From positions 179,230,312-179,294,311 of the forward strand of contig CM097886.1 in the NCBI GenBank assembly GCA_044892525.1: a stretch of 64,000 nt of DNA. The letters are read 5' to 3'. The notes beneath the pieces are model-generated. The model was not told where the DNA came from. It was given only the letters and a program-made list of their open reading frames with translations, and searched no databases. Positions 16,491 to 24,407 of this stretch are shown piece by piece. Each line of letters starts with the position of its first letter. The first letter of the stretch is position 1. This DNA comes from Schmidtea polychroa (Eukaryota). The position numbers were made by a program, and so were the translations under genes.

Positions 16491-16857
16491 TTAACGACAA
16501 TATATTTTCCTTGGCGTGCATCTTGATTTAATGCCAACAGGTCTGTAGAATAGAATGAAGCATGAAAACCAACGGTTCCAGTAGAAACTACAGAATCTCG
16601 AAGCACAAAATAGGTATCGTTTTACTATTTTAGCTTCATTTTCCAGTTTCGCATCATTAACTAAATTAATTAATTAATTAATTAACTAAAATTAATTAAA
16701 AAATATAATTAATAGTATGTGAGTGTGAGATAAACGTACAATGATCCAATTCTTTTCCCGTCACTTCCGCTTCATCCTTTGAATCTTGATCCGTTTCCAC
16801 ATCACAGAAAATCGGAACAATCACCAATAGTCCTAAAAGTAAATAGAAAAGCTTCAT
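16491..16857 (-). CDS. Secreted Cys-rich prepropeptide A, copy 1 (95 aa; exons 16857-16740, 16660-16491)
   Basis: MKLFYLLLGLLVIVPIFC-DVETDQDSKDEAEVTGKELDHFNDAKLENEAKIV-KR-YLFCASRFCSFYWNRWFSCFILFYRPVGIKSRCTPRKIYCR*: signal peptide, acidic propiece, dibasic site, phase-1 GT-AG intron, spliced length 288 nt. Confidence 0.88.
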
Positions 16858-16884
16858 GATTAAAATCGTGTCGGTTCTGTGTGA

Positions 16885-16892
16885 TATTTATA
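16885..16892 (-). promoter_or_regulatory. TATA box of peptide gene A; equivalents for B (18147, +), C (23045, -), D (24057, +)
   Basis: TATAAA(T/A)A-type box 32-42 nt upstream of the ATG in all four paralogues; individually weak evidence in AT-rich DNA. Confidence 0.55.
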
Positions 16893-17344
16893 CTAATAAT
16901 CAAAATGAACTTATTATTTTAATTATTAGATTCTATTACTGATAAATAGTAATGATAAGGCCCTGTCGGTTTTCAAATTAAAAAAATAAAACAAAATGAA
17001 TGAACTTAAAAATATAATACAAATAAATAAAAAATTATATATATATTTAAAAATTTTAAAAAAGATTTTATGTTAAAAATTACACATGGTCTTGTTGCGG
17101 GGGTTCAATTGAGAGTCCCGGAATAGTTTTGGCCTGATTAATAAAATGTTGATGTATTATTTTTGTAATAAATTTGTTTTATTTAACAATTTTTTTTCTT
17201 TTTTTTTACCAGTAAATTTTTTTTTATATTTCACCATTGACTGATTTTGAACTTGAATTAACATTTTATTAATTTCTAATTATAAATCAAAATTTTTATT
17301 TATTTAGTACTGAAACTGGAAAAATTAGAAAAATGCAATTTTTG

Positions 17345-17790
17345 AAATTAATTAAAAATTAATTAAAAATTAATTAAAAATTAATTAAAAATTAATTAAA
17401 AAGAAAAAATTTTTTCTTTCATTCTTTTTTTTATTTATGAAAATCTCTTTTAAATAACTTTTATAAAAATGGTTATAAAAATTAATTATATTAATTAGAA
17501 ATTAATTAATAATTAATTAAAAAGAAAGAATTCTTTCTTTCATTCTTTATTTTATTTATGAAAATCTCTTTTAAATAACTTTTATAAAAATAGTTATAAA
17601 AATTAATTAAAGTAATTAGAAATTAATTAAATATTAATTAAAAAGAAAGAATTCTTTCTTTCTTTCATTCTTTATTTTATTTATGAAAATCTCTTTTAAA
17701 TAACTTTTATAAAAATGGTTATAAAAATTAATTAATTTAATTAGAAATTAATTAAAAATTAATTAAAAAGAAAGAAATCTCTTTTAAATA
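17345..17790. repeat. AT-rich tandem array: 11-bp TTAATTAAAAA units followed by three ~120-bp units (also in copies 2 and 3)
   Basis: Repeated TTTATGAAAATCTCTTTTAAATAACTTTTATAAAAAT(G/A)GTTATAAAAATTAATT; five 11-bp units in copy 1 vs three in copies 2 and 3. Confidence 0.85.
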
Positions 17791-18178
17791 ATTTTTAAGT
17801 AATTATTGTCAGTAGTATATATGGGCATCAATCATTTGGTATCCGGTATCATGGATTTGTTAAAGACTGCTTGAATCCTTTACTTTAAAAATTACTACTT
17901 CTGTAGGAGTATACTCATAGGCAACATACCCCAATATACTCTTCTCGTATCCTTGTTGGGTCCGCGTACCTTATACCTAAAAAGTAATCAAGTTTATGAC
18001 ATTTTTAATTGAAGTAAAATAGATATTTAAAATAGACATTGAACTATATGAAGTATATGAAAATGAAGATTTTATCTTTTGCTTATGTAACTTTTCAAAG
18101 TTGACATGGATAAATAATAAGTTCATCAACGTCAACAGCATCTATATATAAAACCCTCTGCCAGTTACCAGAATCATA

Positions 18179-18524
18179 ATGATGACGGCCTTTTATCTTA
18201 CGATTCTTTTTACACTTTTATTATCGGTTTATGGTAAGTATGAGTATGAGGAAATGGTAGAACACGAAAATGATTTTGAAGTGAAAAATTTAGTCGAGGG
18301 TAAATTTAATTTAATTAATTGAAATTAATTTGATGTTAATTTTTTGTGAAGATCAAGAAGAAATAAGCGATGAAGAGCAATCGGGTGAAACTAAACGAAT
18401 TAATAGAAGAAACTTTTGTGGTTTAAGACAATGCCGTATCCTTTACCGAAGATGGTTCACTTGCACGATATATCTCTACCGAATAGGTTTGATTTGTAAA
18501 CCTCGCTCTTTTCGTTGCATCTAG
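18179..18524 (+). CDS. Secreted Cys-rich prepropeptide B, copy 1 (97 aa; exons 18179-18299, 18352-18524)
   Basis: MMTAFYLTILFTLLLSVYG-KYEYEEMVEHENDFEVKNLVEDQEEISDEEQSGET-KR-INRRNFCGLRQCRILYRRWFTCTIYLYRIGLICKPRSFRCI*; phase-1 intron, TATA upstream. Confidence 0.88.
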
Positions 18525-21696: not shown

Positions 21697-21823
21697 TGGA
21701 TGCTCGTGTTAGGTGTGGTAAAATACTTCTTGTTTTCATAAATAATTATTATTTTATTATTTTCTTATAATAATGTGTTGCAACTAATTAAAATTCTTTT
21801 ATTTAAAATGGATCATTTTCATC

Positions 21824-21976
21824 NNNNNNNNNNNNNNNNNNNNNNNNNNNNNNNNNNNNNNNNNNNNNNNNNNNNNNNNNNNNNNNNNNNNNNNNNNNNN
21901 NNNNNNNNNNNNNNNNNNNNNNNNNNNNNNNNNNNNNNNNNNNNNNNNNNNNNNNNNNNNNNNNNNNNNNNNNNNN
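21824..21976. repeat. Masked variable tandem repeat (N run; 138 N at 38043-38180, 168 N at 54250-54417)
   Basis: Same flanks in all three copies; lengths 153/138/168 differ by multiples of 15. Confidence 0.7.
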
Positions 21977-22690
21977 CGGATGTCTAACATTTGAATAATA
22001 TAAACTCTATTCTTACTTTTAGCAAGTATCATTTATGTTGTTTGAATCAGACTCGTTTACAGCAGTTTATTTCAAACAAAATCTGATTATTCTTTTTTTA
22101 AGTTTTATTTTAATCTTTTCGGTGATAATAATTTGATAATTTTCAACTTTTTTTTATTTTTAATTTGATAAAATTTTTAATATTTATTTAATTCATATTT
22201 TGGATAATTTTATATTTTAATTAAAATTTTTCATTTGTACTATTTTTTATATAATTATTTTATTTCTTTTCGTACAAATACAAATATCGAAAAAATTATG
22301 AGAAAATTAAAATAATACAATTGACACTTTTTTATATTTTTCAAAAGAAAACCGTTATAACTCACTATCGGATATATATTAATACGTCATACGTCTATCA
22401 CGTTGCGTCAATAACGCATTATGTTGAATAACTGGGGTTGAGGGTTACGTGAGTATTCTGAGTTTTACTGAAATATAAAAGATATGCTTGTATAATATAA
22501 CCTTAATTCTTTCACAATATAGCTTTATATTATATTACAATACACTGATGCTTCACTAAAAGTCAGATCTATGGTCTATTTATCATGATCTATCACTTAC
22601 ACTAAGTGAATGAAGATGATTTAAATATGAACGTGACTACAGAAATATGTATTTGTTAAACAGAAATTCCCATCCGGGCGTTTGTATTGT

Positions 22691-23011
22691 CTAAGCACAT
22701 TGGCATACTCCAGGGACACATGGTCCAATTGGTCGATAATAGAAATATACCCAACAAGAATAGTGTTTGTTCATAGTAACATTGAAAAACCTTGTAGCAC
22801 ACCATTTCGCAGGTCCAAATCCATTTGGATTAAATGGATTGAAATGCCGATCTTCTATAAACAATATAAATCAAAAATAATATTAATTATTATTATTATA
22901 ACCTTCTTGATCTTCAGAAAAGTCATCACTTTCTTTTATTTGATTTGTCTCTTTTGCACATATAATTGATAAAATGAAGCAACATCCGAACAAAAGTAAA
23001 TCTAATTTCAT
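22691..23011 (-). CDS. Secreted Cys-rich prepropeptide C, copy 1 (90 aa; exons 23011-22903, 22854-22691)
   Basis: MKLDLLLFGCCFILSIICA-KETNQIKESDDFSEDQEEDR-HFNPFNPNGFGPAKWCATRFFNVTMNKHYSCWVYFYYRPIGPCVPGVCQCA*; 48-nt phase-1 intron, spliced length 273 nt. Confidence 0.86.
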
Positions 23012-24098
23012 TGTTGTTGATTCGGTCTTGTTGAGATATTTTATAATAATTTTGCGTAGCTTGTTATGAATGACCATACCAGGGTTTCAAGCGTGGGCTC
23101 AGTGTCACCAATAACACATTCCTAGTCAAAATGCTAAACTGTTTTTCTTATTTTATTTCACTTGAATTTCATGTTATGACAAATTTTATCAAATTTTCTG
23201 AATATATTTCTCATTTATACGTCACATTCTTCAGCAGGGCCGGATAGGTCCTCAGGCTAAGAAGGTCGAAGTCTAGGATCTCATTTAGTTAAATGTATTT
23301 AATCTAAATTTTTACTCAAAATAAATAACAAAACAAAATGTAATATAGATATAAAAAATAGGAGCAAAATATTTTGAAAAAACAAAATCTGAAAAAACAA
23401 AATGTAATATAGATATTCCTCTTCTATGAATATTCTATGAATATTCCTCTTTTTCATACATGCCTTTGTACGCGCCATGTTCTTAACAGTTTGGCAAGTC
23501 CATTTGAATATAATAAATTTTTATTTTCTTCAGACATCTCAAGCAAACATTATTTGATAATAAATTTACATTATCTCTAATTACAAGACACTCAAAATTT
23601 GGATAGAAGAATTTAGCAATATTTTTAAATTTGTATTCCGCATTGATTAAATATTAATCAATTAAATGATAAGCCTCTTGCTGAGAAGTATACATTAAAT
23701 AAAATCAATGAATTTTCAACTATAAAAATAATCCATTTCAATTTCCTTGAAATTTTATGTAGTTGAAATTTCTTCGCACCAAATATACTTCGCACAAAAA
23801 GTCTTAAATTATCAATTAATTGTTTAACAATAATAATAATAATAATAATATTATTATTTTTTTTTATTATTATTAAACTAATGATTTAAATTAGATAATT
23901 AAATATTCATATTATTTCAATTGTTTTTTTATAAATTCCAACATTTCTTAAAATATCACCATTTGTAAATAAATTACATTCAACCTACTAACAACAATTT
24001 GTGGCCTACGACCATTTAGTGAAACAACCGTAAAGTATTGCTTACCGAATTTTTGATATAAATAGATTCTTTTACACATTTCACTAAACAAATCAAGC

Positions 24099-24407
24099 AT
24101 GCAATTTATTGTGCTCTTCATATCACTCGCTGTCTGTCCATTATTACTTGACAATTTCGTGAAATCGGACGAATCCATGGATAACGTATTAAAAGGTAAC
24201 TTGAAATTTATCATTGGATTTATATAATTTATATTAAATTCAGTAAATGCATATGCGAGTCCTGTAAACACGGAACCGAATCGAGTATTCTGTGGTTTTC
24301 GCACTGCAAAAGTGAATTTTTATTTAGACTACAAATGTCGGGTACCTTTCTATAGGGATGCTTCAACTAACGGTCCATGTTTACCTGACAAATGCCAATG
24401 CTTTTAA
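24099..24407 (+). CDS. Secreted Cys-rich prepropeptide D, copy 1 (86 aa; exons 24099-24195, 24244-24407)
   Basis: MQFIVLFISLAVCPLLLDNFVKSDESMDNVLKVNAYASPVNTEPNR-VFCGFRTAKVNFYLDYKCRVPFYRDASTNGPCLPDKCQCF*; 48-nt phase-1 intron, spliced length 261 nt. Confidence 0.86.

Follow-up and report, generated by a model that had tools for sequence, protein, structure and literature searches.

Four two-exon genes, termed A, B, C, and D, were identified in the window, which is the whole 64-kb stretch of DNA analysed here. As judged from the sequence, they are very probably real secreted-peptide genes. They appear to form an "orphan" family of small secreted prepropeptides that is restricted to one lineage, real-looking, and unannotated. 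The best overall explanation, which is somewhat favoured, is that they encode orphan, convertase-processed secreted peptides that act as host-defence or toxin/effector molecules.

The original prediction of four two-exon genes, each with a hydrophobic N-terminal signal, a propiece, a phase-1 intron, and a basic site, held up when the genes were modelled with GT..AG introns. The models are as follows.

16857-16740, minus strand: gene A exon 1, with the ATG, the predicted signal peptide, and the first part of the acidic propiece, ending in phase 1 before a GT donor
16660-16491, minus strand: gene A exon 2, with the remaining propiece, the KR site, a 41-aa five-Cys region of net charge +8, and the stop (95 aa in all; intron 79 nt)
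18179-18299, plus strand: gene B exon 1, with the predicted signal peptide and acidic propiece
18352-18524, plus strand: gene B exon 2, with acidic propiece, the KR site, a 41-aa five-Cys region of net charge +10, and the stop (97 aa in all; intron 52 nt)
23011-22903, minus strand: gene C exon 1, with the predicted signal peptide and acidic propiece
22854-22691, minus strand: gene C exon 2, with the EEDR site, a 51-aa five-Cys region ending in G-P-C-x4-C-x-C, and the stop (90 aa in all; intron 48 nt)
24099-24195, plus strand: gene D exon 1, with the predicted signal peptide and polar propiece
24244-24407, plus strand: gene D exon 2, with the EPNR site, a 40-aa five-Cys region ending in G-P-C-x4-C-x-C, and the stop (86 aa in all; intron 48 nt)

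All models are in frame, and the four GT..AG introns (48-79 nt) are in phase 1 at equivalent positions of the propiece. Introns of about 50 nt appear normal in this genome, since a neighbouring Ly6/QVR-like gene (21161-21696) also has one of 47 nt in phase 1. Each precursor begins with 14-17 mostly hydrophobic residues after the Met, a putative signal peptide as read from the sequence. Gene B has a second in-frame phase-1 donor directly after the signal peptide (alternative exon 1, 18179-18233), so the length of its propiece is uncertain. The stop codon falls one or two residues past the last aligned Cys in every gene. The GC content of the exons is 0.28-0.39 against 0.08-0.17 in the introns of all four genes; for gene A, exon 1 is at 0.37 and the intron at 0.15.

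Each of the four genes has a TATA-like heptamer between -34 and -42.

16886-16892, minus strand: TATA-like box of gene A, 35 nt 5' of the ATG
18143-18149, plus strand: TATA-like box of gene B, 36 nt 5' of the ATG
23039-23045, minus strand: TATA-like box of gene C, 34 nt 5' of the ATG
24057-24063, plus strand: TATA-like box of gene D, 42 nt 5' of the ATG

The background of such heptamers is 4 per kb per strand, and therefore about 0.04 would be expected per gene. Gene C also has an upstream in-frame ATG, and 23011 is favoured as its start because the TATA-like box (23039-23045) sits inside the resulting extension.

The C-terminal region (40-51 residues) contains five Cys in every member, four of which align throughout. 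The Cys spacings (A 4,9,13,6; B 4,9,10,6; C 14,11,4,1; D 14,13,4,1) agree with the scaffold first proposed, C-x14-C-x10-13-C-x-P-x4-C with an aromatic-Y-R motif. The invariant alignment columns are the four Cys, one Arg, Tyr-Arg, and one Pro. The fifth Cys sits at one place in the A/B subfamily and at another in the C/D subfamily. As had been described, C and D both end in G-P-C-x4-C-x-C; A and B are without GxC...CxC. A recount of the 41 residues after KR in A and B returned the same values as before (net +8 and +10, with no Asp or Glu in either), and 12 of the 41 residues in A are aromatic. The prepro parts of A and B contain 12 and 15 Asp plus Glu, respectively. The net charge is +4 in C and +3 in D. 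A hydrophobic-moment test at helix and strand periodicity gave values no better than shuffles, with D as a marginal exception.

Identity among the paralogues is 26-40% in the alignment of the four members. Leave-one-out profiles recovered the omitted member from 1807 six-frame segments at E 1e-7 to 1e-10, where the best non-member scored E 0.1-0.9, and profile tests across the subfamilies were also significant. In the window the family is confined to the A-D loci, with the next best six-frame match at E 0.8.

The genes are arranged in two head-to-head pairs, with the ATGs 1.3 kb apart in A/B and 1.1 kb apart in C/D. Such pairs, together with tandem amplification, are common among effector-type gene families. 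Both pairs lie in a 16.2-kb unit that is present three times in the window, repeating from 30957 and from 47161.

14722-30956: tandem unit 1, 16.2 kb, with A, B, the Ly6/QVR-like gene, an N gap, C, D, and an AT-rich satellite
32720-33086, minus strand: unit 2 copy of gene A, identical DNA
34386-34731, plus strand: unit 2 copy of gene B, identical
38895-39215, minus strand: unit 2 copy of gene C, identical
40303-40611, plus strand: unit 2 copy of gene D, identical
48924-49290, minus strand: unit 3 copy of gene A, identical
50590-50935, plus strand: unit 3 copy of gene B, identical
55132-55452, minus strand: unit 3 copy of gene C, identical
56543-56851, plus strand: unit 3 copy of gene D, with a single substitution that turns a signal-peptide Val into Ile
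21824-21976: assembly gap (N run) of unit 1, in intergenic DNA with the Ly6/QVR-like gene on one side and gene C on the other
38043-38180 and 54250-54417: homologous gaps of units 2 and 3

The window thus holds 12 gene copies, since the four-gene cluster sits in a unit present three times. The original prediction had missed this repetition, and its count of four is corrected accordingly. The N run of unit 1 starts 128 nt past the Ly6/QVR-like stop, and 715 nt separate it from 22691, where gene C has its 3' end. It stays clear of every exon and intron of A-D, and the ORFs that cross it are X-filled artefacts only. The linkage of the four genes is independent of the gap because the gap-free sequence from 21977 to 38042 contains C and D together with A and B of unit 2.

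That the three units are a scaffolding artefact, in which the assembly repeats a single 16.2-kb locus (or its alleles) threefold and the genome has one copy of each gene, comes close to an even chance. Besides repeat-length indels, only 1-9 substitutions per 7-9 kb separate the units, the N gap is at exactly the homologous position in each, and the coding sequences are identical apart from one base. Against this, the unit junctions at 30957 and 47161 are gapless and within contiguous sequence. The satellite half of the third unit also diverges by 4.5%, and the units are therefore not simple duplicates of one contig.

Database searches returned no relatives of the family. There were no Pfam matches at E<=10, including none to a defensin or toxin family. 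The family profile had no matches among PDB sequences, and none at E<=0.001 among 1.84 billion protein representatives. No relatives were found in metagenome contigs, and a 15-billion-protein collection contained no copy of the A or C precursor and no protein that shares words with either. Single-sequence searches of the PDB returned nothing for A, B, and D. The sole PDB sequence echo is between the last 23 residues of C and 2lix_A, a 27-residue potassium-channel toxin; it is non-significant (E 0.6, 14 bits) and spans only the G-x-C-x4-C-x-C hairpin. The proposal of a new lineage-specific family, with a spacing unmatched to any named family, is borne out by the empty results from Pfam, the PDB profile, and the 1.84 billion representatives. 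A strong match to an already described family, which would have removed that novelty, was looked for in Pfam, the PDB, and the protein representatives, and none was found. Because no database relative was found, A-D are probably defence or toxin-type molecules.

AlphaFold2, given the four-sequence alignment, predicted for the mature region a helix-free antiparallel sheet of three strands, with the same topology in both subfamilies (pLDDT 80.3 for A and 73.7 for C). The predicted strands are 10-12 residues long, and the only helix in the A model falls in the propiece. The mature peptide would fold as this three-stranded sheet, with two disulfides among the four conserved Cys and the fifth Cys left over. 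In a Foldseek search, no defensin, toxin, or antimicrobial-peptide structure was among the 50 best-scoring matches listed, a search in which short peptides score poorly. The best E values among the matches listed were 0.41 and 0.83 in the PDB, neither significant, and 0.06 in BFVD.

These models also bear on whether A-D are non-functional, that is, chance ORFs, decayed pseudogenes, or repeat-element fragments that resemble prepropeptides. Such an origin is very unlikely. Four diverged paralogues retain the frame, the intron phase, four Cys, Tyr-Arg, Pro, and the stop position. All have a TATA-like box at a like distance from the ATG and a GC contrast between exon and intron, and the fold predictions for the two subfamilies are confident and concordant. 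Pointing the other way, stop-free runs of about 60 codons are not uncommon in a 64-kb sequence (as estimated from base composition), the region is rich in repeats, and no transcript-derived protein was found in the protein collections searched.

The original prediction had seen in the termini of C and D a gamma-core link to the CS-alpha-beta defensins, and this part found no support. CS-alpha-beta defensins and scorpion-toxin-like peptides follow the pattern C...CxxxC...GxC...CxC with six or eight Cys, in which CxxxC pairs with the C-terminal CxC, whereas A-D have five Cys and no member has CxxxC. The CS-alpha-beta fold is a helix on a sheet, and the AlphaFold2 models are strand-only in the mature region. 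The link is unsupported because the mature region is predicted to be helix-free and three-stranded and no significant PDB match was obtained. What A-D have in common with CS-alpha-beta defensins and short scorpion toxins (2lix_A) is a precursor, predicted here to be secreted, whose propiece precedes a putative basic cleavage site, and a small cationic Cys-rich product. The last hairpin of the CS-alpha-beta defensins resembles the G-x-C-x4-C-x-C end of C and D, a local likeness only.

Tachyplesin, arenicin, and protegrin-type peptides are likewise Arg- and aromatic-rich, and, as is predicted for A-D, they have disulfide-stapled antiparallel strands and are released from a longer precursor. They have 17-25 residues, one hairpin, and two or four Cys, while in A-D the peptide is 40-51 residues long, with five Cys and a third predicted strand. 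Those peptides come from unrelated precursors, and strand amphipathicity in A-D is no higher than chance. Beta-defensins and the C-terminal domain of big defensins resemble A-D in a three-stranded antiparallel sheet (predicted here), a cationic product, and tandem clusters. Big defensins also have a phase-1 intron 5' of the Cys-rich exon, as in A-D (PMC7203481). Both groups are defined by six Cys and a terminal CC; A-D have five Cys and no CC, much longer predicted strands, and no sequence match or listed Foldseek match to them. Knottin toxins need at least six Cys (C-C-CC-C-C type), and A-D have five, with no Pfam toxin family and no fold match among the Foldseek results listed.

Spider venom precursors are built of a signal peptide and an acidic propeptide that is cleaved after an Arg with Glu at -2 to -4, the Processing Quadruplet Motif (PMC6832493). 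The Glu-x-x-Arg site of B, C, and D fits this motif, which carries little information within an acid-rich propiece. Gene A has a plain KR, as used also by a minority of spider toxins. The mature parts of A-D are not knottins, which have six or more Cys. Introns of 47-52 nt and a GC content of about 22% do not point to a spider genome.

It is possible, though unlikely, that A-D are venom, salivary, nematocyst, or parasite-secreted toxins or effectors that bind a target such as an ion channel in prey or host, and are not antimicrobial. The best explanation covers this reading as a special case in which the target differs. The venom-type Glu/Arg motif of B, C, and D agrees with it, as do the tandem amplification and fast evolution of the family (26-40% paralogue identity), the just mildly cationic C and D, and the weak likeness of the C hairpin to 2lix_A (E 0.6). 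That PDB match, however, is not significant and is without the CxxxC of the toxin, and no toxin fold was among the Foldseek matches listed.

For the family as a whole, a defence or toxin-type effector role is slightly favoured on composition and precursor layout. Each gene would be transcribed from its own TATA-type promoter, and its one short phase-1 intron would be spliced out. The N-terminal signal peptide would direct the product into the secretory pathway. The propiece would be cut off at KR by a furin/Kex2-type convertase in A and B, and after a lone Arg with Glu before it in C and D, which would free a C-terminal peptide of about 40-50 residues. In A and B, the anionic propiece may neutralise the cationic, aromatic-rich peptide until cleaved. 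This combination of a cationic, aromatic-rich product and a neutralising propiece would make extracellular action on other organisms most likely. A specifically antimicrobial, membrane-active role is plausible but somewhat doubtful. C and D would share this fold as paralogues of lower positive charge.

Neuropeptide and hormone precursors have the same layout, with a signal peptide, a propiece, a KR site, and a C-terminal peptide. A-D could accordingly be endogenous signalling peptides (prohormone-, cytokine-, or reproductive-peptide-like), namely dibasic-cleaved, disulfide-stabilised ligands for the organism's own receptors. An odd Cys could also link two molecules covalently, as in the dimers that some cystine-knot hormones form. 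This reading is improbable. The precursors have no amidation signal and no repeated peptide copies, and the very high aromatic and Arg content of A and B, with no acidic residue, is atypical for hormones. Signalling peptides tend to be conserved between species, but the search of the 1.84 billion representatives gave no relative.

An odd number of Cys is unusual in a stable secreted peptide. Since the odd count is conserved, the position of the fifth Cys is subfamily-specific, and the genes form two head-to-head pairs, each divergent pair might be co-expressed and supply both chains of a heterodimer that the spare Cys would link covalently. This would be a previously unseen beta-sheet defence or toxin peptide of two chains, with its own fold, and is a decidedly long shot.

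At present, A-D have the value of a well-supported candidate family, as far as sequence can support one. The genes illustrate how ORF- or homology-based annotation misses two-exon peptide genes with 50-nt introns in a very AT-rich invertebrate genome. The conserved odd Cys raises a checkable question of covalent dimers. If the family is expressed, the secreted defence and toxin-type peptides would gain a Cys scaffold that is new and a small fold that probably is too. New scaffolds show how innate-immune and venom repertoires arise in single lineages, which here would have occurred through tandem duplication of divergent gene pairs.

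The precursors of A, B, C, and D, four small two-exon genes each predicted to encode a secreted five-cysteine peptide, were assembled by joining the predicted exons by script, with the sequence left unaltered. The result is four in-frame products.

Exon 1 16857-16740, exon 2 16660-16491, minus strand: gene A, 95 amino acids
Exon 1 18179-18299, exon 2 18352-18524, plus strand: gene B, 97 amino acids
Exon 1 23011-22903, exon 2 22854-22691, minus strand: gene C, 90 amino acids
Exon 1 24099-24195, exon 2 24244-24407, plus strand: gene D, 86 amino acids

The original prediction, four two-exon genes with a phase-1 intron in the propiece, is borne out by these models. 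The introns of A, B, C, and D are 79, 52, 48, and 48 nucleotides in length, are all of the GT..AG type and in phase 1, and occupy an equivalent place in the propiece. Introns of about 50 nucleotides are normal for this genome, since the adjoining Ly6/QVR-like gene has a 47-nucleotide intron, also in phase 1. Gene B contains a second donor, GTAAGT, after position 18233, directly after the signal peptide; splicing from it to the same acceptor would again be phase 1 and keep the frame. This donor looks better than the donor of the model, so the propiece of B may be 22 residues shorter than modelled.

Each precursor opens with a Met and 14-17 residues that are mostly hydrophobic, and then comes an acidic or polar stretch. 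In A, B, and C the propiece has a strongly acidic character; that of D is polar. The site preceding the C-terminal region is KR in A and B, EEDR in C, and EPNR in D. The genes are arranged in head-to-head pairs, with the ATG codons of A and B 1321 nucleotides apart and those of C and D 1087 nucleotides apart.

In DNA of such high AT content, the length of an ORF carries no significance by itself. When each member in turn is left out, a profile of the other three recovers it at E 1e-7 to 1e-10 from 1807 six-frame segments, where the best noise has E 0.1-0.9. A profile of A and B retrieves C and D (E 1e-4 and 3e-4), and a profile of C and D retrieves A and B (E 3e-7 and 0.013). The GC content is 0.28-0.39 in the exons, 0.08-0.17 in the introns, and 0.20-0.30 in the flanks. 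A TATA-like heptamer begins 34-42 nucleotides upstream of the ATG in all four genes; its background of about 4 per kb per strand corresponds to roughly 0.04 per gene in that span. The stop codon lies 1-2 residues past the last aligned Cys in four out of four. A-D are very probably real genes, and it is highly unlikely that they are non-genes.

The four genes lie within a 16.2-kb unit that begins at 14722 and recurs from 30957 and 47161, forming an array from 14722 to 63400. The unit is therefore present three times and the window holds twelve gene copies, which had been overlooked in the original prediction. No further family members were found in the window beyond the four genes in three copies, and the GC-rich islands elsewhere in the unit hold nothing resembling the A-D family. 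Across the three units, A, B, and C show no difference in DNA. A single base differs in the unit 3 copy of D, replacing Val by Ile in the signal peptide. The units are 99.3-99.96% identical, with the satellite half of unit 3 at 95.5%, and differ, apart from changes in repeat length, by only 1-9 substitutions per 7-9 kb. The window contains eight N runs, and N gaps occur at the homologous place in every unit.

21824-21976: N run between the stop of the Ly6/QVR-like gene and the 3' end of C (22691, minus strand)
38043-38180: N gap at the homologous place
54250-54417: N gap at the homologous place

The threefold unit may be a very recent triplication, and there is close to an even chance that it is a scaffolding artefact. 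None of the four gene models crosses the N run at 21824-21976, so the reading frames of A-D are unaffected by continuity there; the listed ORFs that span it are X-filled artefacts. The linkage of A-D does not depend on this gap, because the gap-free stretch 21977-38042 carries C and D together with second copies of A and B.

Several other features lie within or upstream of the units.

5092-12839: BEL/Pao-type LTR retrotransposon, upstream of the units, with 946-nucleotide terminal repeats that are 99.7% identical
17353-17784: minisatellite in the A-B intergenic region, 121 nucleotides, 3.5 copies, 91% matches
19304-20946 (inner pair 19386-19775): foldback or MITE-like nested inverted repeats, between B and the Ly6/QVR-like gene
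21161-21696 (intron 21417-21463), plus strand: Ly6/QVR-like gene, two exons, 163 amino acids, 10 Cys

At its C-terminus the Ly6/QVR-like protein has a hydrophobic tail, and a (TTA)n microsatellite encodes the poly-Leu run that forms its signal peptide. From one tandem unit to another, this run changes in length by multiples of three. As the scan covered the first exon alone, the match to Pfam QVR reaches 21.9 bits, below the curated cut-off of 27.3. The inverted repeats have arms of 55-90 nucleotides that are 86-94% complementary, in several colinear blocks. The copy length of the 121-nucleotide minisatellite differs among the units, and a satellite of about 6 kb with 11-20% GC lies 3' of D. 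The A-B and C-D intergenic regions have in common only one GC-rich 7-mer and one 10-mer, too few to interpret. The 7-mer, CAGGGCC, is at 16959 (minus strand) and 23235 (plus strand), with its unit copies, and within the window is confined to these intergenic regions. The 10-mer, GGTCTTGTTG, is at 17088 and 23024. Both may be shared regulatory elements, or may be due to chance.

The BEL/Pao element has a GC content of 0.39-0.43, far above the 0.22 around it. Its gag-pol is a single uninterrupted ORF of 1751 codons (6648-11903) that matches the Pao peptidase, RT, and integrase families. The nearest relatives of this ORF, which include proteins of the sponge Dysidea avara, are only 38-44% identical. 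An ORF of the ubiquitin family (PF00240, E 3.7e-24; 6340-6678, plus strand) lies directly upstream and overlaps the gag-pol start; a ubiquitin-like domain before gag-pol is unusual for BEL/Pao elements. Each 946-nucleotide LTR contains a stop-free frame of about 200 codons (5429-6036 and 12235-12839, plus strand), and long ORFs within LTRs are uncommon. These frames have no convincing Pfam match (BLUF alone, at E 0.015, below the cut-off), and an exact look-up of a 299-residue version found nothing on record. Positions 1-649 of the window repeat 6495-7142, the region of the ubiquitin ORF and gag start, in inverted orientation at 95%. The first 5 kb contain five N runs (between 938 and 4825) and, at about 3396-3551, a fragment resembling a transporter with transmembrane segments. 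The BEL/Pao element and the Ly6 domain suggest that the DNA is from an animal, and the GC content of about 22% with introns of 47-52 nucleotides suggests a compact invertebrate genome; a nematode, rotifer, or similar source would be a guess.

All four peptides contain five Cys. The spacings are 4, 9, 13, and 6 in A; 4, 9, 10, and 6 in B; 14, 11, 4, and 1 in C; and 14, 13, 4, and 1 in D. Four of the Cys align across A-D in the scaffold C-x14-C-x(10-13)-C-x-P-x4-C, as originally described. The invariant positions of the alignment are these four Cys, one Arg, a Tyr-Arg pair, and one Pro. The fifth Cys is placed differently in the two subfamilies: in A and B it falls in the interval from Cys 1 to Cys 2, in C and D in that from Cys 3 to Cys 4. 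C and D also carry a Glu-x-x-Arg site and a G-x-C-x4-C-x-C ending.

The claim that the family is new and matches no named one agrees with the searches: no significant relative was found in Pfam, the PDB, 1.84 billion representatives, or the JGI contigs. Pfam gave no matches for the family at E<=10, and Rfam gave none for the whole window. A HMMER profile of the four peptides had no matches among the 1.84 billion representatives. Exon 2 of A and exon 2 of C, searched by words against 5.8 billion clusters, gave no candidate; this search would equally have caught spliced precursors of A or C, if present. JGI metagenome contigs queried with A and C returned pattern matches and no relative, and a full-text literature search with four peptide strings of 9-10 residues found no match. 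Among PDB sequences, searched with the family profile and the four single peptides, nothing was significant and 2lix_A alone appeared, at E 0.6.

AlphaFold2 models were made from the four-sequence alignment. The strands, in exon-2 numbering, are as follows.

15-26, 30-40, 48-54: strands of the A model, mean pLDDT 80.3
17-27, 29-38, 46-52: strands of the C model, mean pLDDT 73.7

Both subfamilies are predicted to form a long hairpin and a third strand, with a helix-free mature part; the helix of the A model is confined to the propiece. Foldseek found nothing significant for the A and C models in the PDB (best E 0.41 and 0.83) or for the A model in BFVD (best E 0.06), and no defensin or toxin structures are among the matches listed. 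Judged by the strand register of the models, the extra Cys of A and B would oppose the second conserved Cys across the hairpin, leaving one of the remaining three Cys unpaired. That each head-to-head pair encodes both chains of a disulfide-linked heterodimer has a slim probability.

By analogy, A-D would resemble defensin-type host-defence or small venom peptides in their working, and they are members of no class tested. The original prediction had likened the ending of C and D to the gamma-core of CS-alpha-beta defensins. What stands is a likeness in C and D alone, local and short of significance; membership of that class is ruled out by the number of Cys, the missing CxxxC motif, and the helix missing from the predicted fold. 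The last 23 residues of C match 2lix_A, a 27-residue potassium-channel toxin, locally and without significance (E 0.6, 14 bits). This match spans the I-G-x-C-V-x-G-x-C-x-C ending, and the CxxxC of the toxin faces a stretch of C with a single Cys. A three-strand sheet like that of beta-defensins and big defensins is predicted for A and C; both classes are ruled out by their six Cys and CC doublet. In big defensin genes, as in A-D, a phase-1 intron precedes the exon that is rich in Cys (PMC7203481). Knottins are ruled out by Cys number.

The precursors would run from signal peptide through acidic or polar propiece and basic cleavage site to a cationic, Cys-stabilised C-terminal peptide, and the propiece would keep the peptide inactive until secretion. 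Such an order is well established in the precursors of defensins and toxins, whose peptides must stay inactive until they are secreted. Spider peptide precursors have the same layout (PMC6832493). We somewhat favor the reading that the products are secreted beta-sheet peptides, processed by a convertase and stabilised by disulfides, that act on other organisms; that they are instead endogenous signalling peptides appears unlikely. Within the secreted-effector reading, an antimicrobial role is plausible but tentative. The C-terminal peptides of A and B have exactly the figures first given for them, with 41 residues after KR, net charges of +8 and +10, and no Asp or Glu. Together with 17-29% aromatic residues, this composition is by analogy typical of membrane-active antimicrobial peptides, with amphipathicity not above that of shuffles in a hydrophobic-moment (simple amphipathicity) test. 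A toxin or other effector role is a lesser possibility, toward which the milder charge of C and D (+4 and +3), their cleavage site, and their ending lean slightly.

The gene family is well supported. Tandem clusters encoding cationic, Cys-rich, secreted peptides specific to one lineage are a kind already well known. The new elements here are the scaffold, the odd number of Cys, which is conserved as the fifth Cys changes place, a predicted fold that has no PDB match, and the layout in divergent pairs.
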